The position numbers were made by a program, and so were the translations under genes. From the sequence record KU686213.1: a stretch of DNA of 64,000 bases; one strand, written 5' to 3'. Each line of letters opens with the position of its first letter. The first letter of the stretch is position 1. The notes beneath the pieces were generated by a model, which saw only the letters and a list, made by a program, of their open reading frames with translations, had not been told where the DNA came from and made no database searches. This document shows, in pieces, positions 1-61,804 of the stretch.

Positions 1-5
1 CTCAA

Positions 6-320
6 ATGCGCAAGATTGAAATCCAAATGAACCGCGCTGTTCAGTCTGGCACCAATTTCAGCCAAGCTAACACCTCAGTTCATCATCACGAGGGCGTAGC
101 AATTGTCCGCCTACACGGTAGCAAGATCGCTGAGGTAGGCGACGATTTCATCACTCTCTTCGATGGTGGCTTCCAATCCAATACTACCAAGAGCCGCCTC
201 AATGCCTTGATGGCTGAGTTCTGCTCACCCGGTGAGAACGTATTCCAGAAAGCTTACCAGTGGTTCATTCGCGCTAACGGCGTCACCATCCCATTTGAGT
301 CAGGTGTGACACTCCGCTAA
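6..320 (+). CDS. Hypothetical early protein (104 aa) of a type common in cyanophage hypervariable regions
   Basis: Clean ORF; its start context CTCAAATG is identical to the end of the cassette before ORF 1040, suggesting another cassette just upstream of the window. Confidence 0.75.
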   Translation: MRKIEIQMNRAVQSGTNFSQANTSVHHHEGVAIVRLHGSKIAEVGDDFITLFDGGFQSNTTKSRLNALMAEFCSPGENVFQKAYQWFIRANGVTIPFESGVTLR

Positions 321-321
321 A

Positions 322-387
322 CTGGCACACGCTCCCTAGCGGGAGCTCCCCCAGCTGCTACAATTGATTCATACCAAAGGAACCACA
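322..387 (+). promoter_or_regulatory. Early cassette copy 1: TGGCAC box, hairpin GCTCCC-TAGC-GGGAGC, -10 TACAAT (359-364), leader ATTCATACCAAA, RBS
   Basis: Shares GCTGCTACAATTGATTCATACCAAA with copies 2 and 3. Confidence 0.8.
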
Positions 388-957
388 ATGAACACCTTTC
401 TGACCTCCTCATTCCAAAACGTTCGCTCTTCAAAGCGTACTGACGAACTCCACACCGTCTTGCTAGCTGAGGTACTGGAAGCTAACCCCCAGTGGGCAGG
501 CTACGACTGGCAGTTCGAATACCGCCTTCCCGTTGACGGCTTCGGTGGAACCTTTGATATTGATATCGCCGGTTTCGTCAACGGTGAGCTGAAGGTGGCT
601 GTCCTGGCTAAGGCAATGAACTCAAACGTCAATAAGAATATCAAAAACTACGCTAACACCACCATTGGCGAAGCTGCCCGTCTGACCTATGCCCCTGGCT
701 TAGACCTCGAGGCTGTGCTCTTCGTTTCAGTCCTTCCCCGCACTGCCCCCCGCTTCAATAAGGCAGGCGAGGTTGTGGGACTTGACAACGTGCTAAGCGC
801 TAAGGCTCGCACCAACATCGGCAATATCATCGAAGCTCAGTACGGTGGGCTGGTTCAGGTCATCGACCTATTCTTCGATATCGACAATATCTCAGAGATG
901 CTGACCTCTGCCGACTTTCAAACTATCACCGTATCGAACGTCGATAAGGTGAGCTAA
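388..957 (+). CDS. Putative PD-(D/E)XK / restriction-endonuclease-like protein (189 aa from ATG 388)
   Basis: ORF; acidic/lysine pattern E..L..D.FGG.FDIDI...AK; ATG 388 follows the cassette RBS (track start 364 lies inside the promoter). Confidence 0.5.
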   Translation: MNTFLTSSFQNVRSSKRTDELHTVLLAEVLEANPQWAGYDWQFEYRLPVDGFGGTFDIDIAGFVNGELKVAVLAKAMNSNVNKNIKNYANTTIGEAARLTYAPGLDLEAVLFVSVLPRTAPRFNKAGEVVGLDNVLSAKARTNIGNIIEAQYGGLVQVIDLFFDIDNISEMLTSADFQTITVSNVDKVS

Positions 958-1039
958 GCCAATTGAGCCACTGGCACAAGGGAGCGGCACAGCTCCCCCC
1001 AGCTGCTACAATTGATTCATACCAAACAAAGGAACTCAA
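958..1039 (+). promoter_or_regulatory. Early cassette copy 2: GCCA-N10-TGGC palindrome, hairpin GGGAGC-GGCACA-GCTCCC, -10 TACAAT (1007-1012), leader, RBS
   Basis: Direct repeat of copies 1 and 3. Confidence 0.8.
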
Positions 1040-1318
1040 ATGAAAATCTCACTCGATCAGCAAGTCGCTCAACTCGCAGCCGAAGGTCATCAAGAGATTG
1101 CAGTCATCAAACTCCCTAGTCAGGCAACCCGCAAGCGTCGCAAGCCTAGCAAGCGTCGCACTACCTCTACGAATGCGGTCAGCCAAACTGCCTACACTCA
1201 AACCGAGAGCCGCAACCTAGGCAAGATCAATTCAGCCTATGCGCGTCAGCATAGTGCCGATAGGAGGGCAGCAGCTCAACAGCGAGCAGCCGAGCTTAAA
1301 GGTCAGCCAATCTTCTAA
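1040..1318 (+). CDS. Hypothetical basic (Arg/Lys-rich) early protein, 92 aa
   Basis: ORF with RBS AAAGGA from the cassette; RKRRKPSKRR stretch. Confidence 0.75.
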   Translation: MKISLDQQVAQLAAEGHQEIAVIKLPSQATRKRRKPSKRRTTSTNAVSQTAYTQTESRNLGKINSAYARQHSADRRAAAQQRAAELKGQPIF

Positions 1319-1388
1319 GAGGCACAAGGGGGCTAGGCAAGCCCCCACCAGCTGCTACAATTGATTCATACCAAACAAGGAACCCACA
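1306..1388 (+). promoter_or_regulatory. Early cassette copy 3: hairpin GGGGGCT-AGGCA-AGCCCCC, -10 TACAAT (1356-1361), leader, RBS
   Basis: Direct repeat of copies 1 and 2. Confidence 0.8.
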
Positions 1389-1835
1389 ATGGCTACTCTC
1401 AACTATTCACCCGCTCAGCAGACTCAACTCATTGAGTTCTATCAGCAATGGCTGCCTAGAGTCAATGCCTTCGGATACGACAATCTCCCCGACGGTTATC
1501 ACACATACTACCGCCACGGCAAGAAGCTGGCTAAGGCAGCAGCAGCCGCTAAGATAGTCGAAGCTAAAGCAGCGCGTCGTCGTGGCAATCCATACCTCCG
1601 TCCCGAAGTTGAATTTATTGTGCATAGCTACGTTCGGACCGATAGTCCTTCTATCGTTGCCGACGAATTTAAGGCAGCTTTTATCGACTCTCCCCATAGT
1701 CGCGAGAGCGTCCGCTCTTGTGCTGGGCAGCTTCGCTCATTAGACAACCTCTGCCCCGACGATACGGGCTGGACTGTAAAAAGCCTAGTCGCAGAAGTAG
1801 CTAGCGAATTATACCCCGAGCGCTTCGCCGCATGA
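1389..1835 (+). CDS. Hypothetical early protein, 148 aa
   Basis: ORF directly after the cassette RBS. Confidence 0.75.
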   Translation: MATLNYSPAQQTQLIEFYQQWLPRVNAFGYDNLPDGYHTYYRHGKKLAKAAAAAKIVEAKAARRRGNPYLRPEVEFIVHSYVRTDSPSIVADEFKAAFIDSPHSRESVRSCAGQLRSLDNLCPDDTGWTVKSLVAEVASELYPERFAA

Positions 1836-1841
1836 TTCTAT

Positions 1842-1906
1842 CAAGGGGCTAGCCACCTAGCCCCGATCTATGGTACAATTCATTCATACCAAACCAGGAA
1901 CCGACA
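1842..1906 (+). promoter_or_regulatory. Early cassette copy 4: perfect hairpin GGGGCTAG-CCAC-CTAGCCCC, -10 TACAAT (1874-1879), leader, RBS
   Basis: TATGGTACAATTCATTCATACCAAAC-CAGGAACC matches the other copies. Confidence 0.8.
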
Positions 1907-2125
1907 ATGCCTTTCTCACCTGCCTGCCGCCTTTCAGACCAGACCCGTGTATGGGTTGAGCGCTCAATCTATGAAGGGTGCGATTGGCAAATCGAAAAGC
2001 ACTTTGGACCAGCACAAGGGCAAGACGCCCAGACCATTGCCGCTCGCTTCGCTGCTACGTATTCAGAGGAGGGCAAGACGATGAGCCTAGCTAACCCCTG
2101 CAGCGGAATCAGAGCCGAAGATTGA
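1907..2125 (+). CDS. Hypothetical early protein, 72 aa
   Basis: ORF between cassette copies 4 and 5. Confidence 0.7.
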   Translation: MPFSPACRLSDQTRVWVERSIYEGCDWQIEKHFGPAQGQDAQTIAARFAATYSEEGKTMSLANPCSGIRAED

Positions 2126-2195
2126 CCAGCCAAGGGGGTTGACGGATCAGCCCCCTCTATGGTCTACAATTCTTACATACCAAACAAGGGAACCG
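2123..2195 (+). promoter_or_regulatory. Early cassette copy 5: hairpin GGGGGTTGA-CGGA-TCAGCCCCC containing -35 TTGACG (2139-2144), -10 TACAAT (2165-2170), leader, RBS AAGGGA
   Basis: Near-identical to copies 6 and 7. Confidence 0.85.
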
Positions 2196-2339
2196 ATGAA
2201 CGCCAAAATCTACATAGCATCGATGACCATTGGCTTCACGCTCTCCACCCTAGCCATTGTATTTGGGGCTATGTCCTTGGACTTCCAAGAGCCTTCGGCA
2301 GCAACCCCAGTTGCTCAAATCACCTGCCAAGGGGGTTGA
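2196..2339 (+). CDS. Small early membrane protein, 47 aa
   Basis: ATG 2196 after the RBS; hydrophobic N-terminal helix IYIASMTIGFTLSTLAIVFGAM; stop TGA lies inside the TTGAC of the next cassette. Confidence 0.65.
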   Translation: MNAKIYIASMTIGFTLSTLAIVFGAMSLDFQEPSAATPVAQITCQGG

Positions 2340-2390
2340 CGGATCAGCCCTCTATGGTCTACAATTCATTCATACCAAACAAGGGAACCG
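2325..2390 (+). promoter_or_regulatory. Early cassette copy 6: -35 TTGACG (2336-2341), -10 TACAAT (2360-2365), leader, RBS
   Basis: Near-identical to copies 5 and 7. Confidence 0.85.
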
Positions 2391-2597
2391 ATGACGACTC
2401 TTCACTCTATCGAAAATCTCACAGCCGAGCTCGACCGCCTAGAGGGAATCAAGAATCGCCTAGCAGGGCTGATCGTAGACCTTAAGCTCACCAACCCAGA
2501 CTCACTATTCATCGGACTCTATCAGGACCGCCTCAAGTTCAATGTTCTCCCCGCCATCAAACTCACCAAGGGCTACATTCTCAAGACCAGCAACTGA
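2391..2597 (+). CDS. Hypothetical early protein, 68 aa
   Basis: ORF between cassette copies 6 and 7. Confidence 0.7.
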   Translation: MTTLHSIENLTAELDRLEGIKNRLAGLIVDLKLTNPDSLFIGLYQDRLKFNVLPAIKLTKGYILKTSN

Positions 2598-2667
2598 CCA
2601 GCCAAGGGGGTTGACGGATCAGCCCCCTATGGTCTACAATTCATTCATACCAAACAAGGCAACCCAA
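2595..2667 (+). promoter_or_regulatory. Early cassette copy 7: -35 TTGACG (2611-2616), -10 TACAAT (2635-2640), leader, RBS
   Basis: Near-identical to copies 5 and 6. Confidence 0.85.
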
Positions 2668-2760
2668 ATGGACCCCATCTCATTCGCAATCGGTATGGTC
2701 GGCGCAGCTCTGGTCGGTATCGTCAACGCCGAGCTGATCAAAGCAAACAACAAAGATTGA
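2668..2760 (+). CDS. Small hydrophobic early peptide, 30 aa (MDPISFAIGMVGAALVGIVNAELIKANNKD)
   Basis: ATG 2668 after the cassette RBS; one predicted TM helix. Confidence 0.6.
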   Translation: MDPISFAIGMVGAALVGIVNAELIKANNKD

Positions 2761-2800
2761 TCAGCCCAGCTCATCCCACTCAATCAAAACTTTTTTTCAA

Positions 2801-3025
2801 ATGACTCCTTCCATCTTTATCGACACTGAGAACAGCTCAACAGCCGTTGATGCCATCGTGCTCACCCCCCGTAGAGTTCAGTTCGCTTGGGCGTCTGGTT
2901 CCGTCTCCGCTCACACCGTCCGCCTCCGCGATCAAGTGAGATTCTACATCCGCCACTTGATGCTCGATGAGGAGCTGAGCTATGGTGCTTGGTCCAACTG
3001 GGTGCTCGATAATCAAATCCTCTGA
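2801..3025 (+). CDS. Hypothetical early protein, 74 aa
   Basis: ORF; no cassette of its own, probably co-transcribed with 2668-2760. Confidence 0.65.
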   Translation: MTPSIFIDTENSSTAVDAIVLTPRRVQFAWASGSVSAHTVRLRDQVRFYIRHLMLDEELSYGAWSNWVLDNQIL

Positions 3026-3081
3026 CCCCTAGGCATCCTGCCCAATCCGTGCTACAATTCACTCAAGTCAATCAACCGACA
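3024..3081 (+). promoter_or_regulatory. Degenerate early cassette copy 8: -35 TAGGCA (3030-3035), 17-nt spacer, -10 TACAAT (3053-3058)
   Basis: GTGCTACAATTCA similar to the other copies; hairpin weak or absent. Confidence 0.6.
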
Positions 3082-3270
3082 ATGCTCAACATCACAGCCG
3101 ACCAGAATGGAACCATCTCTTGGCAAGAGGCTCTCCGCTTCGTGAATGAGGCAGCAGCTGATCAGCGCAACTTCCTCATCCGTGATTTCTTACAGTCTGC
3201 TTACGCTGGATTGAGAGGAGAGAGAATCGACCTAGGTGAGCTCAACGTCTGGATCACAGAGAACAGCTGA
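3082..3270 (+). CDS. Hypothetical early protein, 62 aa
   Basis: ATG 3082 in context AACCGACAATG, as in copy 4. Confidence 0.65.
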   Translation: MLNITADQNGTISWQEALRFVNEAAADQRNFLIRDFLQSAYAGLRGERIDLGELNVWITENS

Positions 3271-3278
3271 ATCACACA

Positions 3279-3302
3279 GCCTCCCGCAAGGGGGGCTTTT
3301 TT
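3279..3302 (+). terminator. Rho-independent terminator closing the early array
   Basis: GCCTCCC-GCAA-GGGGGGC followed by T6. Confidence 0.85.
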
Positions 3303-3565
3303 AATGCGTGCGTATCGACAGTACTCGTTCGTGATAGGACAGTGCTATCCATTCGTGCGTTGAGGACAGTGGTATGGCGTTGCGATCCATTGGGGGGTGG
3401 CGGCGTTACCTTCGTATATAAAAAGTACCTTCTATCTAAGCTATAAAAGTAAAGATCGACCTATACTTATCGCTATTTAAAAAATTCTCCCAGATATTCT
3501 ATGGACCACAGAGTTGGCTCAGAGTTGTCTCTATATTATACCACACTTCTTAAATATCCCCCCAT

Positions 3566-3600
3566 AAAAAAATCCCCCAGGTATTCAATGCCCCTAGGAG
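3566..3600 (-). terminator. Minus-strand intrinsic terminator
   Basis: On the minus strand CUCCUAGG/CCUGGGGG 8-bp stem (G-U pairs), 11-nt loop, then A-U7. Confidence 0.55.
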
Positions 3601-3708
3601 ATGATTATTATTAACTTGATAACATTCGCTTATCTCTGTGTAATCCCTCTACACAGAAGTATTGCGTATATCTTCAATAAGTACTTAAAGTGTCTTATCA
3701 ACCTCAAC
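3566..3708 (-). ncRNA. Candidate ~140-nt structured sRNA or primer RNA
   Basis: Bounded by a consensus sigma70 promoter and a terminator; stems TCTGTGTA/TACACAGA (3635-3657) and TTGATAA/TTATCAA (3616-3622/3695-3701); no convincing ORF. Confidence 0.45.
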
Positions 3709-3714
3709 AAGGCT
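3678..3714. repeat. 37-bp block, copy A (copy B at 51441-51477, 1 mismatch)
   Basis: TAAGTACTTAAAGTGTCTTATCAACCTC(A/G)ACAAGGCT read directly at both loci. Confidence 0.95.
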
Positions 3715-3743
3715 ATTCTACAAGTATCTCCGTGTGTTGTCAA
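3715..3743 (-). promoter_or_regulatory. Minus-strand sigma70 promoter TTGACA-N17-TAGAAT
   Basis: TGTCAA at 3738-3743, ATTCTA at 3715-3720, 17-nt spacer. Confidence 0.8.
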
Positions 3744-3870
3744 GCCCCCATCAAGAGTATCCCTTTAAGTATCTCAACCATCCCCTGACAAACTGCACAA
3801 GGCTATTTAGAGAGTCATAAAAGAAGTATTTTCATTGAGATGCCGTAGGCACACACCGTAGGTGTGTTAG

Positions 3871-3930
3871 TAGAGATACTTAAAGAACCATAGAGAATCT
3901 TAGAGAAACATAGAGGACCGCAGAGAGCGC
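3871..3930 (+). repeat. Six in-phase decamers, consensus TAGAGAANC(A/T)
   Basis: TAGAGATACT TAAAGAACCA TAGAGAATCT TAGAGAAACA TAGAGGACCG CAGAGAGCGC, exact 10-bp period. Confidence 0.8.
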
Positions 3931-4069
3931 GAAAAATCCCCCTCTCAAGTTATCTCCGAAGAGAGTATTACAGAGAGGGTTATACTATTACTAAGGAATA
4001 CCCATATACTCTACAACTCACTCCGAAGGGTATAGAAGAGCTTAGTGGTCAGGGGGGAAATATGCTGTG

Positions 4070-4077
4070 TATAAATA
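4070..4077 (+). promoter_or_regulatory. T4-type late promoter TATAAATA with no protein gene behind it
   Basis: Exact gp55 consensus. Confidence 0.65.
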
Positions 4078-4081
4078 GAAG

Positions 4082-4232
4082 TGGAATACAAGCCTAGGAG
4101 CGTCTCTAATAGGCTCTCATCCTACGGGGGATAGAGACACTCCGAGTTCCATTGAGGCTCCCCACAAAGGCATTTAGAGTACGTAGAAGAACATATAGTA
4201 ACGTAGAGGTCCATAGAGGTCCTCTTTTTTTA
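4082..4232 (+). ncRNA. Candidate late structured sRNA
   Basis: Late promoter upstream; stem GGAG-C-GTCTCTA/TAGAGAC-A-CTCC (4097-4143); terminator-like GAGGTCC/GGTCCTC plus T7 at 4205-4232. Confidence 0.35.
4175..4223 (+). repeat. Second phased TAGAG array (5 units, 9-10 bp period)
   Basis: TAGAGTACG TAGAAGAACA TATAGTAACG TAGAGGTCCA TAGAGGTCCT. Confidence 0.65.
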
Positions 4233-4283
4233 TGGGCGAACCCTTTTTATGACCCTAGGGGGCAAGCCCCCACAATGAGGACC

Positions 4284-4314
4284 CATAAATACCAATAGAG
4301 AATATTAACTTATT
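4284..4314 (+). promoter_or_regulatory. Late promoter plus leader, repeated before each of the three paralogs (also 5029-5059 and 5783-5813)
   Basis: (C/T)ATAAATAC(C/T)AATAGA(G/A)AATA(T/C)TAACTTATTATG in all three. Confidence 0.85.
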
Positions 4315-5028
4315 ATGGCAGTTAACATAAGCGGTAATGGAGCTATTGAGGGTATTACTTCTTTTAATGGGGAGGATATTGCTTCTTTTAATGAGGGAGG
4401 TCCTACTTTCCGCAATATACTCTTTAATGGTTGGGTGAACACCAGTATTGGAATAAACCAACGTGGCAAAACAATAGCTCAAGTTTCTAATGGGGAATAT
4501 TGGGCTGATAGGTGGCAACGTGTTTCATCCACAACTATGACCCAGAAGGTTGAAGGGGGTAACTATATACCAAATAGGACATATACGTTATCTGGTAATA
4601 ATGTAACAACAACACAAATCACATCCCCTGCTAGTGGAACTTGGGATTGGGGTACTGTGCCCTCCAATGCGTCATTGGTTCAGTTGGAGCTAGGTGATAC
4701 TGCATCTTCTTTTGAATATAGACCCTATGGGTTGGAAGTAATTTTGTGTCAGAGGTATTATGAAGTTGTTGATTGTGAATATGGTACAACCGCAGTACTT
4801 GATGCGGGGAATTCGAATAAAGCTATAAAAAAACCTTGGATATATAAAGTTAGTAAAAGAATTATACCAACCGCTATTGTAACTGCTCAAAGTGGTGCTT
4901 ATTCTACCAATGCTAGTGTGAGTGGAATACGAAGTTCTTTTTGCAATCTCAATTGGCAATGGCAACAGACATCTGGAAATTTTGATAGGACCAAGGCTGC
5001 TGTAGTTAACGTCGATGCCGAACTATAA
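4315..5028 (+). CDS. Putative virion or fibre-tip protein, paralog 1 (237 aa)
   Basis: FRN..NG..INQRG..Y.ADRW and QLE.G..AS.FE.R...LCQRYY motifs of a type common in cyanophage fibre-associated proteins; late promoter. Confidence 0.75.
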   Translation: MAVNISGNGAIEGITSFNGEDIASFNEGGPTFRNILFNGWVNTSIGINQRGKTIAQVSNGEYWADRWQRVSSTTMTQKVEGGNYIPNRTYTLSGNNVTTTQITSPASGTWDWGTVPSNASLVQLELGDTASSFEYRPYGLEVILCQRYYEVVDCEYGTTAVLDAGNSNKAIKKPWIYKVSKRIIPTAIVTAQSGAYSTNASVSGIRSSFCNLNWQWQQTSGNFDRTKAAVVNVDAEL

Positions 5029-5059
5029 TATAAATACTAATAGAAAATATTAACTTATT

Positions 5060-5782
5060 ATGGCAGTTAACATAAGCGGTAATGGAGCTATTGAGGGTAT
5101 TACTTCTTTTAATGGGGGCGGACTTACCTTTCGTAATATACTCTATAATGGGTGGGTAAACACCAGTAATGAAATAAACCAACGTGGCAAAACAATATCC
5201 GAGGTTTCTGATGGAGACTATTGGGCTGATAGGTGGCAACGTGTTTCCTCTACGACAATGACCCAAAAAGTTGAAGAGGGTAACTATATACCAAATAGGA
5301 CATATACGTTATCTGGTAATAATGTAACAACAGTGCAGGTAACATCACCTGCCAGTGGAACTTGGAATTGGGGAACTGTTCCCTCCAATGCTTCATTGGT
5401 TCAGTTAGAGTTGGGTGATACTCCATCTGCTTTTGAATATAGACCCAAGGGGTTAGAGTTGGGTTTGTGTCAGAGGTACTATCAAAATCTCAATGTTAGA
5501 ATGTTGTTAGATCAGGTGAATTATTTATTTTCTTCTCGCAATTCTTATGTTAATCCAATGCGAACTGCACCATCAGTAGGTTTTACAGGTAAGTTAAAGT
5601 GGGATGATTTAATTACCGGGCAGTTAAGTTCTTCTGGATTTGATTCGGATAATGTTAATGTTTCATCTAAGGTGATTCGGGCAACACAATTTTACGTTTA
5701 TGTTGCGTTGTCGGGGGTTCAGCCGAATGTCTTTAAAAGGTATCAATTTGAAGAGGCTATTAGCCTTGATGCCGAACTATAA
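5060..5782 (+). CDS. Putative virion or fibre-tip protein, paralog 2 (240 aa)
   Basis: Same N-terminal ~140 aa as paralog 1, divergent C-terminus, ends DAEL. Confidence 0.75.
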   Translation: MAVNISGNGAIEGITSFNGGGLTFRNILYNGWVNTSNEINQRGKTISEVSDGDYWADRWQRVSSTTMTQKVEEGNYIPNRTYTLSGNNVTTVQVTSPASGTWNWGTVPSNASLVQLELGDTPSAFEYRPKGLELGLCQRYYQNLNVRMLLDQVNYLFSSRNSYVNPMRTAPSVGFTGKLKWDDLITGQLSSSGFDSDNVNVSSKVIRATQFYVYVALSGVQPNVFKRYQFEEAISLDAEL

Positions 5783-5813
5783 TATAAATACCAATAGAGA
5801 ATACTAACTTATT

Positions 5814-6488
5814 ATGTCAGTTAACATAAGCGGTAATGGAGCTATTGAGGGTATTACTTCCTTTAATGGAGGAGGGCTTACTTTCCGCAATATTCTTTAT
5901 AATGGTTGGGTGAACACCAGTAGTGAAATCAACCAACGTGGCAAAACAATAGCTCAAGTTTCTAATGGAAACTATTTTGCAGATCGATGGGAAAGAGTTT
6001 CATCCACAACTATGACCCAAAAAGTTGAAGAAAAAAATTATATACCAAATAGGACATATACGATATCGGGTACTAACGTAACAACAGTGCAGGTAACATC
6101 ACCTGCTAGTGGGACTTGGGATTGGGGAACTGTGCCGTCTGATGCTTCATTGGTTCAGTTAGAGTTGGGTGATACTGCATCTTCTTTTGAATATAGACCC
6201 TATGGATTGGAGTTGAGTTTGTGTCAGAGGTACTATCAGTTTGCATATGCTAATATTAGAGGTAGGGGTGGGGGTATTTCTGAAAATGCAGTAACCTGGA
6301 ATACTCAAATGAGAATAGCTCCAACAATATTGCGCATTGCGGCAGCTTCAGGTGGAGGTCTCAATAATATAATTCGATATCTTGATATAGCTCCCTATGG
6401 GTGTCGTATGGAAGCAACAAACACCCAACCTGGCGGTACGGAGAGTTATGCACTTGCGCAAATCTTGGAACTAAATGCTGAACTATGA
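5814..6488 (+). CDS. Putative virion or fibre-tip protein, paralog 3 (224 aa)
   Basis: Same N-terminal ~140 aa, divergent C-terminus, ends NAEL. Confidence 0.75.
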   Translation: MSVNISGNGAIEGITSFNGGGLTFRNILYNGWVNTSSEINQRGKTIAQVSNGNYFADRWERVSSTTMTQKVEEKNYIPNRTYTISGTNVTTVQVTSPASGTWDWGTVPSDASLVQLELGDTASSFEYRPYGLELSLCQRYYQFAYANIRGRGGGISENAVTWNTQMRIAPTILRIAAASGGGLNNIIRYLDIAPYGCRMEATNTQPGGTESYALAQILELNAEL

Positions 6489-7217: not shown

Positions 7218-7244
7218 AAAAAAGCTCCTTCGGGGGCTTTTTTT
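7218..7244 (+). terminator. Intrinsic terminator
   Basis: AAAAAAGCTCC-TTCG-GGGGCTTTTTTT. Confidence 0.85.
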
Positions 7245-7278
7245 ATGCCTATAAATAATGATAAATGTTGCTTATGCG

Positions 7279-37909: not shown

Positions 37910-38179
37910 ATGTCTAATCAAAACTACATAAGATATGATGAGACTCCAGGTGATGTGGCTTCACCCCAACCAACTACAACTCCAGGTACTGTTGATCCGG
38001 GCAGTACTTGGGAAACCAAGCCATATCTAAACTTTAACGGCGACTACGAAAGGTATAGTGATACCGCAGGAATCTCAACTGCACCTCAACCAACTCCAAA
38101 TGGTGGGGATTATGTTAGATATAGTGATGTTCCAGGTGTTGCTGCACCCCCCGCACAGCCCTATGTAAGAACTCCCTAA
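37910..38179 (+). CDS. Hypothetical Pro/Thr-rich protein with three Y.RY....G repeats, 89 aa
   Basis: YIRYDETPG, YERYSDTAG, YVRYSDVPG each followed by a PQP/AQP segment. Confidence 0.7.
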   Translation: MSNQNYIRYDETPGDVASPQPTTTPGTVDPGSTWETKPYLNFNGDYERYSDTAGISTAPQPTPNGGDYVRYSDVPGVAAPPAQPYVRTP

Positions 38180-38185
38180 TAAACT

Positions 38186-38210
38186 GCCCTACATACAGTA
38201 GGGCTTTTTT
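38186..38210 (+). terminator. Intrinsic terminator
   Basis: GCCCTAC-ATACA-GTAGGGC followed by T6. Confidence 0.75.
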
Positions 38211-38216
38211 AATGCA

Positions 38217-42757: not shown

Positions 42758-42780
42758 TTCCAACACAAAAAACACACAGA

Positions 42781-42805
42781 GGATCCCGAAAGGGGTCCTT
42801 TTTTT
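42781..42805 (+). terminator. Intrinsic terminator after g19
   Basis: GGATCCC-GAAA-GGGGTCC followed by T7. Confidence 0.85.
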
Positions 42806-42853
42806 ATGCGCTAAATATAAATGTAAGACGGTATACACCCACTTTTTATTATT

Positions 42854-48220: not shown

Positions 48221-48246
48221 GGGGCTCCGAAAGGGGCTCCTTTTTT
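48221..48246 (+). terminator. Intrinsic terminator after g23
   Basis: GGGGCTCC-GAAA-GGGGCTCC (G-U pairs) followed by T6. Confidence 0.85.
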
Positions 48247-48284
48247 ATGCCTCTAAATAGTACACGGTCTATTATATTATTAGA

Positions 48285-49487: not shown

Positions 49488-49531
49488 CCTCCTGAACATC
49501 GGCTAAATAACTTTAGCTGATGTTTTTTTTA

Positions 49532-50992
49532 ATGTCCGACTTGATTATCAGCAAGAAGAACGAGGTGTTTCTTCAAATTGATTGTGAGCCACATATTCAA
49601 TATGAGTTGCGTGATGCATTCTCATTTGAGGTTCCTGGTGCTAAGTTCCATCCATCATTCCGTAAGAGGCATTGGGATGGGACAATTAATTTATTTTCCC
49701 CACAAACCAAACAGATCTATGTTGGGTTGCTAGATCGTGTTATTGCGTTTTGTGAACAGTATGGTTATACATATGAATTCAGGGACAATAAGTTTTATGG
49801 ATTGCCTTATGAAGAAAATGAAGAGATCTCTCCTATTGGTGTTACTGATTGGGTTAAATCCATTACTTCTTATAAGCCCAGAGATTATCAGCTCCACGGG
49901 ATCTATACCGCTCTCAAATCAAATAGGAAACTTATCGTTTCTCCAACTGCGTCTGGTAAGTCGCTAATGATCTATGCCCTAGTGGCATACTATGCTCAAC
50001 GCAATGAGAATATTCTTATTGTAGTTCCTACTACATCTTTGGTAGAACAAATGTATAAGGACTTTGAGGATTATGGATTTGATGTTGGTTCTTATTGCCA
50101 TAAGATCTATGGTGGCAAAGAACTTAAAACTGATAAGCAAGTCACTATTACCACTTGGCAGTCTGTATACAAATTACCTAAACCATTCTTCCAAAAGTTT
50201 AATGTAGTTATTGGTGATGAGGCACATAACTTTAAGTCAAAGAGTTTAGTTAGTATTATGACTAAGCTATGTGACGCAAAGTATCGCTTTGGTTTCACAG
50301 GTACTCTTGATGGAACACAGACAAATAAGCTTGTATTAGAGGGACTATTCGGTCCAGCATATAACACCATTAGAACAAAGGAGCTAATGGAAGCTGGTCA
50401 CGTAGCTAAACTTGATATAAAAGTTCTCTTATTAAAGCATGATGAGCAAACATTTAATAGGTATGAGGATGAGATTCAGTATCTTATCGGACATGAGAGA
50501 AGAAACAAATTTATTAGCAATCTAGCATTAGGTTTGGAAGGTAATACTTTGGTTCTATTCACAAGAGTAGAAAATCACGGTAAACTCCTTCACGATCTTA
50601 TAAATAATAAGAAAGATGAGAAACACCAAGTATTCTTCGTACATGGTGGTGTTGATGTAGAAGAACGAGAACAAGTACGAGAGATCACAGAAAGAGAAAA
50701 CAATGCGATTATCATCGCATCCTACGGTGTATTCAGTACTGGTATCAATATTAAAAATCTACACAATGTAATTTTTGCTTCTCCATCTAAATCTCGTATA
50801 CGTAATTTACAAAGTATAGGACGTGTTCTTAGAAAAGGTGCTAATAAAGATAAGGCTATGTTATATGATATAGCTGATGATACGACAAAGAATGGTAAAA
50901 AGAACTACACTCTTAATCACTTAATTGAACGTATTAAAACATATAACGAAGAAAAATTTAATTATGACATAATCAATGTTAATTTACGGTAA
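49532..50992 (+). CDS. uvsW: DNA helicase UvsW (SF2)
   Basis: SPTASGKS, IGDEAH, GFTGT, LQSIGRVLR; start ATG 49532. Confidence 0.96.
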   Translation: MSDLIISKKNEVFLQIDCEPHIQYELRDAFSFEVPGAKFHPSFRKRHWDGTINLFSPQTKQIYVGLLDRVIAFCEQYGYTYEFRDNKFYGLPYEENEEISPIGVTDWVKSITSYKPRDYQLHGIYTALKSNRKLIVSPTASGKSLMIYALVAYYAQRNENILIVVPTTSLVEQMYKDFEDYGFDVGSYCHKIYGGKELKTDKQVTITTWQSVYKLPKPFFQKFNVVIGDEAHNFKSKSLVSIMTKLCDAKYRFGFTGTLDGTQTNKLVLEGLFGPAYNTIRTKELMEAGHVAKLDIKVLLLKHDEQTFNRYEDEIQYLIGHERRNKFISNLALGLEGNTLVLFTRVENHGKLLHDLINNKKDEKHQVFFVHGGVDVEEREQVREITERENNAIIIASYGVFSTGINIKNLHNVIFASPSKSRIRNLQSIGRVLRKGANKDKAMLYDIADDTTKNGKKNYTLNHLIERIKTYNEEKFNYDIINVNLR

Positions 50993-50997
50993 GTATT

Positions 50998-51423
50998 ATG
51001 ACTGATAAGAAGATAGCATCTATTAAACTAGTATCGGGTGAAGAAGTTGTATGTACATTACTGAGTATTGAAAAGGATGGTTCTTATACAATCTTATCTT
51101 TTACCAATCCATTAAGAATACAATTACGGGATAGAAGGAGGAACAAAAGGTATTCATTAGAGCCTTGGTTGTGTCTTAAAAATGATACGATTCATTGTAT
51201 TGATGTTACTAAAATTATTACAGTAAATGAAATTACTGATGAGGATGTTCTTAGTGACTATAACTCATACTACAGGAAAAAGATTAACTTAATGCCTAAA
51301 CCTAAAAGGGAGATATCAACTTCTAATAAAATAGGTTATGTAGGTAATACAAAAGACTTTAAAGATGTTCTAGAAAAACTCTATAGAGATACTGATTCAT
51401 ATGAGAAGCCAACTGACGTATAA
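50998..51423 (+). CDS. Conserved hypothetical protein (Sm-like N-terminus), 141 aa
   Basis: ASIKLVSGEEV; usual position between uvsW and g55. Confidence 0.75.
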   Translation: MTDKKIASIKLVSGEEVVCTLLSIEKDGSYTILSFTNPLRIQLRDRRRNKRYSLEPWLCLKNDTIHCIDVTKIITVNEITDEDVLSDYNSYYRKKINLMPKPKREISTSNKIGYVGNTKDFKDVLEKLYRDTDSYEKPTDV

Positions 51424-51440
51424 GTATCTCTATGTCTCTC

Positions 51441-51477
51441 TAAGTACTTAAAGTGTCTTATCAACCTCGACAAGGCT
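51441..51477. repeat. 37-bp block, copy B (copy A at 3678-3714)
   Basis: Direct sequence identity, 36/37. Confidence 0.95.
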
Positions 51478-51478
51478 G

Positions 51479-51507
51479 ATTGTACTCCATTTTGAGACCC
51501 TTGTCAA
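51479..51507 (-). promoter_or_regulatory. Minus-strand sigma70 promoter TTGACA-N17-TACAAT, divergent from g55
   Basis: TGTCAA at 51502-51507, ATTGTA at 51479-51484. Confidence 0.8.
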
Positions 51508-51530
51508 GTCTTTACCATTTATTGTGAATC

Positions 51531-51541
51531 TGTGCTATAAT
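51531..51541 (+). promoter_or_regulatory. Extended -10 promoter TGTGCTATAAT for g55 (same motif at 57971-57981 and 60625-60635)
   Basis: TGnTATAAT; ATAATGTGCTATAAT is identical at 57967 and 60621. Confidence 0.7.
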
Positions 51542-51567: not shown

Positions 51568-52044
51568 ATGGCTAAAGCTAAAACTGAACATTACGTTAAC
51601 AATAGAGATTTTCTTGATGCTCTTATCGAGTACCGAGAGAAGGTAGCTGAAGCTGCTGCTAATGATCGCCCTAAGCCTAGGATTACTAACTATATTGGGT
51701 CTTGCTTCCTTAAGATTGCTACCCACCTTAGCTATAAGTCTAACTTCGTAAACTATATGTACCGTGAGGATATGATCTCCGACGGTATTGAGAACTGCGT
51801 ACAATACATCCATAACTTTGACCCAGCTAAGTCAAAGAACCCATTCGCATACTTCACCCAGATTAGCTACTTCGCATTCCTACGTCGTATTCAGCGAGAG
51901 AAGAGACAGCTTGATATTAAAACTAAGATTGTAGAGAAGAGTGGATTTGAAGCACTAATGACTTCTGATGCTAATCTAACCAACGAATACCGTAACGATT
52001 ACAACGCAATCAAAGAAAACATCATTACCAAGCTTAACTCATGA
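51568..52044 (+). CDS. g55: Late transcription sigma factor gp55
   Basis: HYVNN..FL.AL; YIG.CFLKIATHLSYK.NFVNYM.REDMI.DGIENC; KNPFAYFTQI. Confidence 0.97.
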   Translation: MAKAKTEHYVNNRDFLDALIEYREKVAEAAANDRPKPRITNYIGSCFLKIATHLSYKSNFVNYMYREDMISDGIENCVQYIHNFDPAKSKNPFAYFTQISYFAFLRRIQREKRQLDIKTKIVEKSGFEALMTSDANLTNEYRNDYNAIKENIITKLNS

Positions 52045-55110: not shown

Positions 55111-55740
55111 ATGAGTAAATTTAAGAACAACCTTATAGATGCTAATTTATTTCCTAGTTTTCTTTTATCTACTGATCTAAGATCTCTTGTTAGTAATAAT
55201 GATATAAACTCAGAGTTTACTATTATTAGAAATATTGATAGTGGGTTGAATAAAACAAACGTTGGTGGGTGGCACTCCACTCTTTATACGAAGAATAGTG
55301 ATTTGTGTGATTACACTAACATAAAAAAACTATATGAACTTGTTTCTGAGTTTGTTGATGAATTTTTAGAAAATGATAAAACTAATTTATATACATCGAG
55401 TGTTAACTCATGGTTGTTGGAAAATGATTGTGGGTCATATAATACACTACATAATCATGGTAAAACTGATCTAATTGGGGTATATTATGTTAATATTCCT
55501 GAGGACTGTGGTGGATTAACTCTAATAAGAACCGACGCATTTACTCATACTGCGCTATGTGGTTCAAATAATTCTACACAATTTGCAAATTCCTTTACCC
55601 CAGATATTGATATCGGTAGATTGTATGTTATGCCTGGTCATCTTTATCATCATGTAAGACCATTTGATAGTGAAGGATTGAGGAGATCTATTGTATTCAA
55701 TATTAATTGTCAAGATATAAGTTATAGACAATCTGAATAG
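55111..55740 (+). CDS. 2OG-Fe(II) oxygenase family protein (TIGR02466-like)
   Basis: HNH...GVYYV.IP; L.VMP..L.H.V; R.SI.FN; late promoter CTAAATA at 55102. Confidence 0.8.
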   Translation: MSKFKNNLIDANLFPSFLLSTDLRSLVSNNDINSEFTIIRNIDSGLNKTNVGGWHSTLYTKNSDLCDYTNIKKLYELVSEFVDEFLENDKTNLYTSSVNSWLLENDCGSYNTLHNHGKTDLIGVYYVNIPEDCGGLTLIRTDAFTHTALCGSNNSTQFANSFTPDIDIGRLYVMPGHLYHHVRPFDSEGLRRSIVFNINCQDISYRQSE

Positions 55741-55784
55741 TGTCCACTGCCCCGCCAAGGGGCTTTTTAATGCTCTATAATAAT
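55738..55784 (+). promoter_or_regulatory. Terminator/promoter cassette before the CobT-like gene
   Basis: AGTGTCCACTGCCCC-GCCAA-GGGGCTTTTT-AATGCTCTATAATAAT; near-identical copy at 58974-59019. Confidence 0.8.
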
Positions 55785-55804
55785 TTCATTGAAACGGATA
55801 CGCT

Positions 55805-57970
55805 ATGTCAGTCAACCTAGAAGTCAAAGGCACACTTGCCCGTCTGCTCGCAACAGAAGACCTTTTGGTTGAGCACAAGAATGTAAGCACCGCTAGCTTT
55901 AACGTCCATAGCCGTGTCCTTACGCTCCCACGATGGGAGAAAGCATCCAATAATGTATTCAACCTCCTTATCTCCCACGAAGTAGCCCACGCTCTCTTCA
56001 CACCAGATGAGGATTGGAGAAAGAAAACTAAAATCCCACAGGGCTTCATTAACGTCACAGAAGATGTGCGTATTGAAGTATTGATGAAGAAAAAATACGC
56101 AGGTCTCCCCAAAACATTCTTCCGTGGATATCAAGAACTCCACGATCAAGACTTCTTCGGCATTGCTGATGAAGATGTATCCGCAATGAATATTGCTGAT
56201 CGTGTAAACCTACACTTCAAGATCGGCAACTTCCTAAAAGTTCCTTTCACAGCTGCCGAGATGGTTGTTGTGGACCAATGTGCTGCCGCTGTAACCTTCG
56301 ATGATGCTATCGCAGCAGCAGAGGCACTCTATGCCCTCCACGAGCAGCAGAAAGAAGAGCAGCAGCAATCTGCTGATGAAGAAGTTAGTTCTTCTCCAGA
56401 GAGCACCGAGGAGCCACAGGGAACTGATGGTGGAGAAAGCGAAGAGCCCGAAGAGGCACCATCTGATAGTGAAGGTGAATCAAGTGAGGGTGGCGCTCCT
56501 CAAGAAGGTGAGGGTGATGAGGAACCTATTGAGAGAACTGAGAGTGATGATAGTGAGAATGTTGGTGGAGATTCTGCTGGTAATCTTACTGATGAAGTAA
56601 GTACTATGGAAAACTTCAATGAGAACCTTGAAGATATGGCTACAAAGAGTACCTATAATGAGCCTCTTTACCTGACTTATCCATCATTCCCAGCTGATAA
56701 GTATGTTGCTACTAACAAAGATGTTCACGAATATATTAGTACTTCATTCACAATGCAACGCCAATTCTTTTATGATAATAACCCAGAAAATGCTGATTAC
56801 TTTATCAATAATCTATTTGGGGTATATGATAAAAAGTATGCCGAATTCAAGCGAAATATTCAAAGTGAAGTCAACTATATGGTAAAGGAGTTTGAGTGTA
56901 AGAAGTCTGCTGCCGCATACTCTCGCGCATCAACATCCAGAACTGGTGTTCTTGACTGCACTAAACTCCATACCTATAAGTACAACGAAGATTTATTCAA
57001 GAAAGTAACAACTCTCCCACAGGGGAAGAATCACGGTCTTGTATTTGTTCTGGATTGGTCTGGCTCTATGTGTTATATCCTAGAAGATACTATCAAGCAA
57101 CTACTCTCTATCGTTATGTTCTGCGATAAAGTGAATATTCCCTTTGAGGTCTATGCATTCACTAACGAGTGGAACCGAGATAATGCAAGCTTCCAAGCAA
57201 ACTCTGATACTCCAAATGAGTTTATGGTTGGTGATGAGTTTAGTATGATGAATATTCTTACTAGCACAGTCAATCGCAAAGAACTACAACGCCAAATGCA
57301 AACAATCTTTATGATTGCTGCATCCTATAATACTAGGGGTGGTGATATTGTTCCTAGCAGAGTAGGTCTTTCTGGTACTCCACTCAATGAGGCACTAATC
57401 TCACTACGCAAAATCCTTCCACAATTCAAAAAGAATAATAATGTTGAGAAAGCACACGTAATGGTTCTCACTGATGGTGAAGCTGGTTGGACTAGGTATA
57501 CCACTGAAATCCAGTCATATGATGGTCAAAGTAAAATTAGTGTGGGGCGATTGGGTCATCAGAATGGATATCTTCGTAACCGAGTTACAGGTTCTGTCCG
57601 TAAGATTGATAAGAGTAGATTGGGTGGTGTGACCACATCAATCCTTGAAGACTTGCGCGATGAGTTCCCAGAAAGCACTTTCACTGGATTCCGTATCCTA
57701 GAGAGGCGTGGTAACTGGTTTGTCCGCCAAGCAGTTCAGTATGATGAAACTCAAATATCCAAGTGGAAGAAGGAGAAGTCAATTGCTCTAACTAATGCTG
57801 GGTATAATAAGTACTTCATTGTTGCTTCTGATAGCATCCAAGAATCCACTGAATTTGATGTAGATGATGGAGCCACCAAAGCTAAAATCAAATCAGCATT
57901 TACTAAATCACTAAAAAGTAAGAAGAGTAACAAAAAAGTATTGGGTGATTTCATCTCTCTCATCGCATAA
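55805..57970 (+). CDS. Metallopeptidase-motif plus VWA protein (CobT-like), 721 aa
   Basis: HEVAH (HExxH), acidic linker, MIDAS DWSGS, GTPL, LTDGE. Confidence 0.85.
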   Translation: MSVNLEVKGTLARLLATEDLLVEHKNVSTASFNVHSRVLTLPRWEKASNNVFNLLISHEVAHALFTPDEDWRKKTKIPQGFINVTEDVRIEVLMKKKYAGLPKTFFRGYQELHDQDFFGIADEDVSAMNIADRVNLHFKIGNFLKVPFTAAEMVVVDQCAAAVTFDDAIAAAEALYALHEQQKEEQQQSADEEVSSSPESTEEPQGTDGGESEEPEEAPSDSEGESSEGGAPQEGEGDEEPIERTESDDSENVGGDSAGNLTDEVSTMENFNENLEDMATKSTYNEPLYLTYPSFPADKYVATNKDVHEYISTSFTMQRQFFYDNNPENADYFINNLFGVYDKKYAEFKRNIQSEVNYMVKEFECKKSAAAYSRASTSRTGVLDCTKLHTYKYNEDLFKKVTTLPQGKNHGLVFVLDWSGSMCYILEDTIKQLLSIVMFCDKVNIPFEVYAFTNEWNRDNASFQANSDTPNEFMVGDEFSMMNILTSTVNRKELQRQMQTIFMIAASYNTRGGDIVPSRVGLSGTPLNEALISLRKILPQFKKNNNVEKAHVMVLTDGEAGWTRYTTEIQSYDGQSKISVGRLGHQNGYLRNRVTGSVRKIDKSRLGGVTTSILEDLRDEFPESTFTGFRILERRGNWFVRQAVQYDETQISKWKKEKSIALTNAGYNKYFIVASDSIQESTEFDVDDGATKAKIKSAFTKSLKSKKSNKKVLGDFISLIA

Positions 57971-58973: not shown

Positions 58974-59019
58974 AGTGACCACTGCCCCACTATGGGGCTT
59001 TTTTATGCTCTATAATAAT
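58974..59019 (+). promoter_or_regulatory. Terminator/promoter cassette before cobS
   Basis: AGTGACCACTGCCCC-ACTAT-GGGGCTTTTTT-ATGCTCTATAATAAT. Confidence 0.8.
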
Positions 59020-59040
59020 CACATACAACACAAGCCAACT

Positions 59041-60676: not shown

Positions 60677-61345
60677 ATGAAACTATCTGACTCAACTATT
60701 TCAGTTCTTAAGAACTTCAGCTCTATCAACCAGAGCATCATCGTTGGTGAAGGCAACACCTTGAGAACTATTTCAGTTATGAAAAATATACTAGCTGAAG
60801 CAACTGTTGAGGAGACCTTCCCTCGCACCTTCGCAATCTATGATCTCAATGAGTTCCTAAACGGTCTATCACTCCACGATGACTACACCCTAGACTTCTC
60901 TAACGACACCTACGTTGTTATCCGTGAAGGTCGCCGCCGTGTGAACTATCACTTCGCTGACCCAGAGGTCATCGTAGCACCCCCTGAGAAGCAGCTTGTA
61001 CTCCCTTCTAGCGATGTACGCTTCCAGTTGGATCATTCACAGCTTCTACAGCTTGTGAAGGCAGCCAGCGTCTATAAGCTCCCTGACCTTTCTGTTGTTG
61101 GTGAAGAAGGAACCATTAGCTTGGTTGTCCGCGATAAGAAGAATGACTCTTCTAACATCTTCTCTGTTGATGTTGGTGAGACCACTGATGACTTCTGCTT
61201 CAACTTCAAGGTTGAGAACACAAACAAAATCCTCGCAGGAAACTACGATGTTGTGATCTCCCAGAAGCTTCTAGCACAGTTCACAGGGCAGAAGAATGGG
61301 GTCGAGTACTTCATTGCTCTTGAACCAGATTCCAGCTTCGGCTGA
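60677..61345 (+). CDS. g45: Sliding clamp gp45
   Basis: MKLS..T..VLKNFSSINQSI; FAIYDLNEFL; YFIALEPDS. Confidence 0.96.
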   Translation: MKLSDSTISVLKNFSSINQSIIVGEGNTLRTISVMKNILAEATVEETFPRTFAIYDLNEFLNGLSLHDDYTLDFSNDTYVVIREGRRRVNYHFADPEVIVAPPEKQLVLPSSDVRFQLDHSQLLQLVKAASVYKLPDLSVVGEEGTISLVVRDKKNDSSNIFSVDVGETTDDFCFNFKVENTNKILAGNYDVVISQKLLAQFTGQKNGVEYFIALEPDSSFG

Positions 61346-61353
61346 TACACAGA

Positions 61354-61378
61354 GCCTCCCGTAAGGGGGGCTTTTTTT
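61354..61378 (+). terminator. Intrinsic terminator after g45
   Basis: GCCTCCC-GTAA-GGGGGGC followed by T7; same stem as 3279-3302. Confidence 0.85.
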
Positions 61379-61407
61379 ATGCTATATATTATAGATTAGA
61401 TTATATT

Positions 61408-61619: not shown

Positions 61620-61772
61620 ATATCTATTAAAAGTGTAATGGGTTATACTGTATCCATAGCGAACCGAGCGCTTTATATTCGGCTTTCCTTGTAAATTCCA
61701 AGGACATGGTTACGGAATCTGGGGAACGGAAAGCCCTAGATGCTATACTGCCCCCGTAAGGGGGTTTTTTTT
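61620..61772 (+). ncRNA. Candidate structured RNA
   Basis: No long ORF; GTAAATA late-like box at 61610-61616; perfect GGCTTTCC/GGAAAGCC stem (61681-61688/61728-61735); ATAGC/GCTAT; terminator CCCC-GTAA-GGGG-T9 at 61752-61772. Confidence 0.35.
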
Positions 61773-61804
61773 GTGCCTAAATAAATCAAAATACTTTTAA
61801 TATT

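Follow-up and report, generated by a model that had tools for sequence, protein, structure and literature searches.

The stretch of DNA analysed here (the window, 64,000 nucleotides) is 100% identical to bases 62001-126000 of Synechococcus phage S-CAM7 isolate 0910SB42 (KU686213.1), a T4-like cyanomyovirus of 214,214 bp in which nearly all genes are on the plus strand. Two loci in it, A and B, carry the same short cassette on the minus strand, a promoter followed by an almost invariant leader. Locus A is inside a non-coding gap of about 1 kb (3271-4314). On one side of the gap is a block of small early open reading frames (ORFs) closed by a plus-strand terminator (3278-3297), and on the other are three paralogous ORFs placed ahead of baseplate genes. 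Locus B is within the 144-nt spacer that leads from ORF141, an ORF of 141 amino acids found after uvsW, to the late sigma-factor gene gp55. The cassette is very probably a real family of transcription units that is under selection. As to its role we tentatively favour, with a probability of roughly 0.45, a mechanism at the RNA level in which the predicted product would act as a regulatory RNA.

The cassette and its four sites in S-CAM7

The two copies of the 37-mer TAAGTACTTAAAGTGTCTTATCAACCTC(A/G)ACAAGGCT, identical at 36 of 37 positions, lie exactly where the preliminary description of this DNA had placed them. No third match with up to three mismatches was found in the window, none is expected from shuffled sequences, and the block was also recovered as repeat family D20 of the window. 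Each copy is abutted by a consensus minus-strand sigma70 promoter, as had been claimed; both promoters agree with the consensus at 11 of 12 positions and they are the sole minus-strand sites in the 64 kb that reach at least 11/12. It is also correct that their spacers are unrelated and that neither faces a protein gene, since promoter A reads into the non-coding gap and promoter B antisense into ORF141. The leader block of copy A has the palindrome TAAGTACTTA as its 3' end, and the arrangement of promoter and leader seen at this copy is also present in the relatives L010, L012, L016, L017 and L023.

All four occurrences of GAGATACTT in the window are at these two loci (0.92 expected; four were reached in 2 of 100 shuffles), and the positions given earlier for GAGATACT are right. 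The looser motif RRTACTT averages 0.48 occurrences per 400-nt bin but reaches seven in a bin at locus A; the bin of locus B and one unrelated bin at 57601 come next with three each.

The elements had been described as a pair. This did not hold, as S-CAM7 has four copies, two of them beyond the window (Table 1). A sequence-only model made from 27 related copies and run over the 214-kb genome gave exactly four strong matches (E = 6e-23 to 4.5e-20) and otherwise only one weak half-copy, and BLAST also finds four places per S-CAM7 genome. Copies A and C each have their own promoter and an intrinsic terminator in intergenic DNA (3566-3708 and L006:8270-8375, respectively), the arrangement that defines a small-RNA gene. 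The terminator of RNA A had been missed by a simple terminator scan because the loop limit of the scan was 8 nt; its CCTGGGGGATTTTTTT is conserved in relatives, and the terminator is kept in L010, L012, L016 and L017. At copy C the promoter and the same leader are followed by a perfect 10-bp GC-rich terminator hairpin with a T-run, defining a predicted RNA of about 67 nt (fold z = -2.8 to -3.4) directly ahead of the late promoter of the glutaredoxin gene. By these predicted features copy C would be a textbook small-RNA gene. Copy D has a terminator hairpin that encloses the -35 box and reads into an ORF of 58 amino acids adjoining a GIY-YIG-like gene. A discrete small RNA at copy B was considered and rejected, as there is no terminator and a long hairpin at 51386-51430 is not conserved in L014 or L021.

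Table 1. Features of the cassette copies and their surroundings (window positions unless marked as genome positions)
Feature	Position	Strand	Remark
Copy A	genome 65,670-65,748	-	inside window
Copy B	genome 113,431-113,512	-	inside window
Copy C	genome 208,265-208,346; to 208,375 with terminator (L006:8265-8375)	+	outside window
Copy D	genome 157,059-157,139 (L005:7059-7139)	+	outside window
Promoter A	3715-3743	-	TTGACA (3743-3738), 17-nt spacer, TAGAAT (3720-3715)
Leader block, copy A (37-mer)	3678-3714	-	predicted start G3708, G of invariant TGT, 7 nt past -10 box
Inverted repeat around predicted start, copy A	3700-3714	-	AGCCT (3714-3710), loop TGTTG, AGGTT (3704-3700)
Predicted small RNA A, about 143 nt	3566-3708	-	internal 10-bp hairpin UCUGUGUAGA/UUACACAGAG; fold z = -3.0
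Intrinsic terminator of RNA A	3566-3602	-	stem AUCUCCUAGG / CCUGGGGGAU, 11-nt loop, U7 run (3572-3566)
RRTACTT / GAGATACTT cluster, locus A	3663-3881		3663-, 3680+/3685-, 3728-, 3773-, 3830-, 3875+
Module 2, degenerate half-copy of leader (AGCCTTGTGCAGTTTGTCAGG...GAGATACTTAAAG)	3763-3812 (conserved block 3759-3810)	-	directly upstream of copy A
Promoter B	51479-51507	-	TTGACA (51507-51502), 17-nt spacer, TACAAT (51484-51479)
Leader block, copy B (37-mer)	51441-51477	-	predicted start G51471
Inverted repeat around predicted start, copy B	51462-51478	-	CAGCCT (51478-51473), TGTCG, AGGTTG (51467-51462)
Predicted unterminated antisense transcript B	50998-51471	-	across ORF141 toward uvsW; no terminator-like site on strand
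uvsW helicase	49520-50992	+	gene antisense to RNA B
ORF141 (141 amino acids)	50998-51423	+	between uvsW and gp55; antisense to RNA B
gp55 promoter	51512-51541	+	TTACCA, 18 nt, TG-extended TATAAT; back-to-back with promoter B
gp55 coding sequence	51568-52044	+	
Composite terminator/late-promoter repeat	3266-3307, 7232-7257, 38174-38215, 42768-42809, 48234-48259		
Composite terminator/late-promoter repeat, further sites	55739-55789, 58974-59024, 61341-61391, 61740-61790		

Conservation and anatomy of the element

Pattern scans of IMG/VR recovered 57 contigs with the cassette, and these fall into the same four positional classes as the S-CAM7 copies: antisense to the genes upstream of gp55; likewise antisense where the early block ends, with the CCTGGGGGATTTTTTT terminator; upstream of glutaredoxin and co-directional with the genes; and upstream of the 58-amino-acid ORF or GIY-YIG-like gene. 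At the glutaredoxin position the terminator is kept in L019, L020, L022, L024, L025 and L051, with stems that differ and yet stay complementary (GGGACC/GGTCCC, GAGGACC/GGTCCTC, AAGGAC/GTCCTT and GAGGTACC/GGTACCTC in this class). The 37-mer is 92-97% identical in relatives whose ORF141 and gp55 are 58-85% and 77-94% identical to those of S-CAM7, and it remains so even where ORF141 is at 58-62% and gp55 at 77%. The element is thus better conserved than a core gene (92-97% against 58-77% for the flanking genes). The central claim of the preliminary description, that of a conserved minus-strand promoter with a conserved transcribed leader under selection, is supported by this conservation.

The region upstream of gp55 was compared more widely, using 80 IMG/VR loci that had been recovered with gp55, plus three isolates; 82 of these loci had enough upstream sequence. 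An antisense promoter matching the consensus at 10 of 12 positions or more is present in 82/82 of these cyanomyovirus loci, and 80 of them reach at least 11/12. Its -35 box lies 38-120 nt from the gp55 ATG, mostly 44-55 nt, and the loci contain 65 distinct leaders. The three isolates, phages ACG-2014f, ACG-2014j and S-RIM8, represent three other genera; at this position each carries a consensus minus-strand promoter, and its leader is related to that of S-CAM7 but has diverged from it. With the S-RIM8 version as query 222 cyanophage records gave a match, in almost all cases one per genome. In ACG-2014f genomes (215-228 kb) the element is single-copy, so the number of cassettes does not track genome size. 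Being universal and single-copy elsewhere, the element must have undergone a lineage-specific expansion to give the four S-CAM7 copies; by this comparison copy B is the ancestral copy.

These data bear directly on the suggestion that the repeat is a chance or recent neutral duplication without function, or else an unannotated small protein gene, both of which we regard as most improbable. Gene conversion could keep copies alike within one genome, but position and sequence are conserved in many divergent contigs and at all four classes of site, and the promoter is kept in 82/82 loci together with compensatory changes in the repeat described below. Positional conservation in relatives had been named beforehand as the check on a chance recent duplication; it was found and contradicts such an origin. 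With regard to a protein, a plus-strand ORF of 55 amino acids (3601-3768) overlaps promoter A and RNA A and is annotated as a hypothetical protein in the S-CAM7 records KU686212 and NC_031927, although not in KU686213. It is probably no gene, because its frame is shifted in L023 and broken by stop codons in L010, L012, L016 and L017. No conserved ORF was found across the cassette, and a small peptide was rejected as there is no start codon at a workable distance after the GAGG motif in copies A, B and C.

A host-derived small RNA was likewise rejected, the exact 19-mer core being absent from picocyanobacterial genomes; its matches are limited to coding regions of unrelated bacteria and one phage-like contig. 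A search of Rfam at both loci gave no family (best E at least 0.35, far under the gathering thresholds).

The invariant TGT of the leader puts its G 7-8 nt past the -10 box, which is the expected position of a start, and transcription probably begins at this G. In L057 the leader has GGAGG 10 nt ahead of an ATG, which is consistent with the predicted start. From +1 to +25 the leader contains 36% G and 6% C (skew +0.73, against a strand background of -0.24). From +25 to +50 it is 77% A+T, compared with 65-74% in the flanks, and overlaps the coding 3' end of ORF141. Moreover, an inverted repeat of 5-6 bp opens at the first base past the -10 box and closes 4-10 nt past the start. Compensatory changes are seen in its arms (AACCT/AGGTT, ACCCT/AGGGT, AACTC/GAGTT, ACTC/GAGT, AGCCT/AGGTT), and in copy B it includes one G.U pair. 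Across 64 distinct gp55-upstream leaders 5.03 contiguous pairs were observed, against 4.57 +/- 0.09, which is above all 2000 partner permutations. Its non-Watson-Crick positions comprise 21 G.T and no A.C, counts that overstate the number of independent events because the sequences are related, and the repeat therefore appears to pair on the RNA-like strand of the promoter.

Formally, the simplest possibility for this repeat is a hairpin formed by the non-template DNA strand when it is displaced or scrunched. We know of no precedent for a hairpin centred on the start site that pairs only on the non-template-sense strand. An operator for a dimeric protein is unlikely, as the arms span 13-16 nt and the mismatches are strand-asymmetric. 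A first idea, the hairpin CUUGUY-GAGGUU-GAUAAG, was abandoned since it is not kept beyond S-CAM7-like leaders and is incompatible with the better-supported repeat at the start site. No convincing match to DnaA, NtcA or LexA boxes was found in a comparison by eye.

Possible roles of the cassette

The RNA product is favoured because two classes of site keep terminators that define short non-coding transcripts, because the transcribed block is near-invariant beyond the promoter and because the wobble bias follows the RNA-sense strand. Transcription itself is, like its start, predicted from the sequence. In the proposed mechanism the host sigma70-type RNA polymerase would bind the near-consensus TTGACA-N17-TAnAAT promoter and produce an RNA whose first 25-35 nt, apparently under strong selection, would be G-rich, C-poor and Shine-Dalgarno-like (GUYGAGGUUGAUAAGACACUYUAAGUACUUA). 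Copy B would fire against every gene, back-to-back with the gp55 promoter, and give an unterminated antisense RNA over ORF141 and uvsW. This RNA may act in cis, by antisense or interference on the uvsW side, early in infection. It should run far, because cyanobacteria are not known to have Rho. In the S-CAM7 lineage the cassette would have been copied to three more sites, copies A (about 143 nt) and C (about 67 nt) giving sibling small RNAs with a common 5' module and copy D serving as the leader of the 58-amino-acid ORF. In T4, uvsW is held back until late (PMC3016281). Sibling small RNAs with a shared 5' end had been among the options of the preliminary description; copies A and C, both ending at intrinsic terminators, agree with it, and copies B and D do not.

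Several findings weigh against a regulatory RNA. The combination of own promoter and intrinsic terminator in intergenic DNA is not found at copy B, which has no terminator, or at copy D, and at 68 of 70 related copy-B loci there is no terminator within 450 nt and hence no discrete small RNA. In copy D and in several relatives the cassette simply serves to drive a gene. The start-site repeat has its 5' arm at -6 to -2, a segment not expected in an RNA from this promoter, and the SL2 palindrome is imperfect in copy A. RNAalifold gave no consensus structure, which can be explained by stems that are too short and by register shifts in the alignment. In addition, a search for phage targets of the 5' module gave a best start-region duplex in the window of -20.7 kcal/mol, which is no better than the best duplexes of shuffled seeds (mean -21.9).

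It is also conceivable, if rather doubtful, that the cassette works at the level of DNA or of transcription as a strong divergent promoter, its RNA being a by-product. Such a promoter could tune gp55 by transcription-induced supercoiling or polymerase competition, collision could block read-through between temporal gene classes, and the extra S-CAM7 copies could be mobile promoter cassettes similar to the promoter-early stem-loops (PeSLs) of T4-type phages, which recombination would have spread and made uniform. The -35 boxes of promoter B and of the gp55 promoter are only about 5-10 bp apart, the antisense -35 box is close to the gp55 ATG in all loci, and locus A falls precisely where the early-gene block gives way to the structural genes. 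In L018, L054 and L057 ordinary genes are driven by the same cassette. The D-type copies have a terminator hairpin around the -35 box as in PeSLs, and T4-type phages recombine at such cassettes (PMC4122927). However, a role of the promoter alone does not account for a run of 37 transcribed bases that hardly varies, for the conservation of terminators that delimit short products or for the covarying repeat at the start site, and most cyanomyoviruses keep a single copy, unlike the swarms of PeSLs.

The preliminary description had read the two loci as transcription-primed replication origins. The support for this is circumstantial, coming from position, leader and hairpin; it is weakened by the terminator, by the copy that drives a gene and by a skew that does not change at locus B. 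Two of the four copies are moreover co-directional with the genes and one of these is an mRNA leader, which does not agree with a plain pair. R-loop origins of the kind of T4 oriF, oriG and oriE are an unlikely explanation, if one to be taken seriously. The G-rich first 25 nt of an early RNA would stay hybridised to the template, and the start-site hairpin would form in the displaced non-template strand; the A+T-rich DNA further on would open, the gp59/gp41-61 machinery would load and UvsW would later remove the hybrid. On this view cyanomyoviruses would have their primary origin at copy B, and S-CAM7 would possess four origins.

In each cyanomyovirus locus examined the element is indeed universal, usually single-copy, non-coding and beside uvsY-uvsW, and at copy B it points against all genes with no product and no terminator. 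Origins would also suit the G-rich leader followed by A+T-rich DNA, the inverted repeat that spans the start and pairs only on the non-template-sense strand, the iteron-like RRTACTT cluster at locus A, and the annotation of gp59, primase-helicase and UvsW in KU686213.1. The near-consensus sigma70 promoters correspond, at the sequence level, to the pre-late promoters of such origins and are of the early mode, not MotA-dependent; cyanomyoviruses are not known to have MotA. Spacing between the four S-CAM7 copies is even, the gaps being 47.8, 43.6, 51.2 and 71.6 kb (P = 0.006, post hoc, for a minimum gap of at least 43.6 kb).

The T4 origins oriF/ori(uvsY), oriG/ori(34) and oriE (Kreuzer and Brister 2010, PMC3016281) resemble the cassette in consisting of a promoter and a downstream A+T-rich stretch, which in T4 is the DNA unwinding element (DUE), within about 100 bp. 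They too are near uvsY/uvsW at points of divergent transcription, oriE has an early-mode promoter with short repeats (iterons), and UvsW, gp59 and gp41/61 are encoded in both phages. No sequence motif is common to the T4 origins, and their DUEs work irrespective of sequence (PMC3016281), whereas the transcribed block of S-CAM7 is almost invariant over 37 nt. Unlike them, some S-CAM7 copies end at a predicted terminator after about 67 nt and one leads a gene. The conserved and covarying intrinsic terminator about 67 nt downstream is found across one whole class of sites. The A+T enrichment is modest relative to the flanks, giving a weak indication of a DUE, and lies over the coding 3' end of ORF141, and the large ACG-2014f genomes have a single copy. 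Cumulative GC skew was discarded as uninformative about origins: its curve passes locus B without an inflection, and where it changes, at locus A, there is a block of genes of foreign composition. We consider it improbable that the gp55-divergent antisense promoter is the primary origin of T4-like cyanophages, of an early-promoter R-loop type beside uvsW and present in S-CAM7 as four evenly spaced copies, some of them doubling as small-RNA genes or gene promoters.

Related systems and neighbouring features

Among described systems PeSLs (Arbiol et al. 2010; Comeau et al. 2014, PMC4122927) come closest, although two of their defining features are lacking in S-CAM7. They are likewise short conserved cassettes that recur within a genome, each centred on an early promoter close to TTGACA-N17-TATAAT and with a leader that carries a Shine-Dalgarno motif, and a sigma70-like early promoter in a repeated cassette is what is found here. 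The stem-loop or terminator hugging the -35 box is absent from copies A and B and occurs in D-type copies only. PeSLs end in the start codon of a downstream ORF and form dense arrays in hyperplastic regions, co-directional with the genes (PMC4122927), and such a Shine-Dalgarno motif with the start codon of a clustered co-directional ORF is the second missing feature. The four S-CAM7 copies, in contrast, are dispersed 44-72 kb apart, two are antisense and three are without an ORF; their conserved part consists of 37 transcribed bases, and the covarying stem-loop flanks the start and is not upstream. The window has a PeSL-like array of its own (1-3270), with a leader different from the 37-mer.

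Concerning the regulatory RNA reading, the antisense RNA CfrI of cyanophage S-PM2 (Millard et al. 2010, as described in PMC2984593 and PMC12197685) is a non-coding antisense transcript of a T4-like cyanophage, as is predicted for copy B. It lies opposite psbA and a homing endonuclease gene and is about 225 nt long; no multi-copy 5' module is reported for it, and it is unrelated in sequence and position to the S-CAM7 element.

OmrA/OmrB and Qrr1-4 are sibling trans-acting bacterial small RNAs with a conserved 5' seed. Copies A and C resemble them in their shared and conserved 5' end, divergent 3' part, own promoter and intrinsic terminator. Unlike in these families, the 5' end in S-CAM7 resembles the Shine-Dalgarno sequence itself and not its complement, no target was found, copy B is unterminated and copy D is an mRNA leader.

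The preliminary description did not recall the element from cyanophages, and this agrees with the literature covered, the Syn9 transcriptome excepted. A search of the available literature for cyanophage small RNAs, antisense RNAs and origins, and for the motif, brought up only CfrI, wcaG/manA/glnA and unrelated primers; the only replication origin found there was one predicted for Syn9. The kind of element, whether a phage early-promoter cassette or a phage small or antisense RNA, is already known. The universality of the gp55-divergent antisense promoter, the covarying repeat spanning the start site and the expansion into four contexts in S-CAM7 appear to be new.

Much of the marine Synechococcus and Prochlorococcus is killed by T4-like cyanophages, whose early regulation is poorly understood. 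What seemed a local curiosity is a group-wide feature, as all gp55 loci examined carry a near-perfect host-type promoter directed against the genes, a G-rich leader and a covarying hairpin. With about 80 bp the element is a defined experimental target for the timing of uvsW and gp55, for small-RNA function or for origin activity. The S-CAM7 lineage offers a natural comparison set comprising a terminated small RNA, a longer one, an open-ended antisense RNA and an mRNA leader.

The gap at locus A contains more than the cassette. It is conserved blockwise in relatives at 76-90% (3275-3602, 3759-3810, 3901-4037, 4208-4269). Module 2 has a late-promoter-like CTAAATA in place of the sigma70 -10 box and corresponds to the weak model match (L003:15763-15807, E = 6.6). 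It is 86-90% conserved in L012, L016 and L017, where it is downstream of module 1, the small-RNA promoter, whereas in S-CAM7 it is upstream. Beyond the terminator of RNA A the minus strand has an extended -10 box, TGTGGTATAAT, at about 3535-3545, which L012 retains; another terminator-like minus-strand hairpin is near 3925-3985. Taken together, these blocks, module 2, the extended -10 box and the extra hairpin suggest more minus-strand non-coding units.

ORF141 has 140-147 amino acids in relatives, and KU686213 annotates it from 113169 only (85 amino acids). Its homologues are labelled 'methylamine utilization protein' in other records, yet a Pfam search gave no family for ORF141, or for the 58-amino-acid ORF of copy D.

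A diverged cassette, TTGACA-N17-TATACT-TGCCTTGTCGAGGTTGATAAGG, leads an ORF of 76 amino acids in L018 (IMGVR_UViG_3300043427_003273) and L032 (JBMTBW010000120.1). The latter is a 1.3-kb contig binned as a Nanopelagicaceae metagenome-assembled genome and near-identical to the viral contig L018; it is probably phage DNA that was mis-binned.

The small early ORFs of window 1-3270 have 52% GC and a GC skew of -0.15, compared with 36-43% GC and a positive skew elsewhere. Ahead of each of them is a PeSL-like repeat (families D2, D4, D5 and D9) consisting of a GC hairpin with TTGACG in its loop, TACAAT and the leader TCATTCATACCAAACAAGGAACC. In 4285-6488 the three tandem paralogous ORFs (4315-5028, 5060-5782 and 5814-6488) are each preceded by a conserved segment of about 30 nt (family D1, 71-86% identity). 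Finally, a composite repeat formed by a terminator hairpin, TTTTTTATGC and CTATAAATA (families D6-D8) joins an intrinsic terminator to a T4-type late promoter and recurs at intervals among the structural and replication genes.

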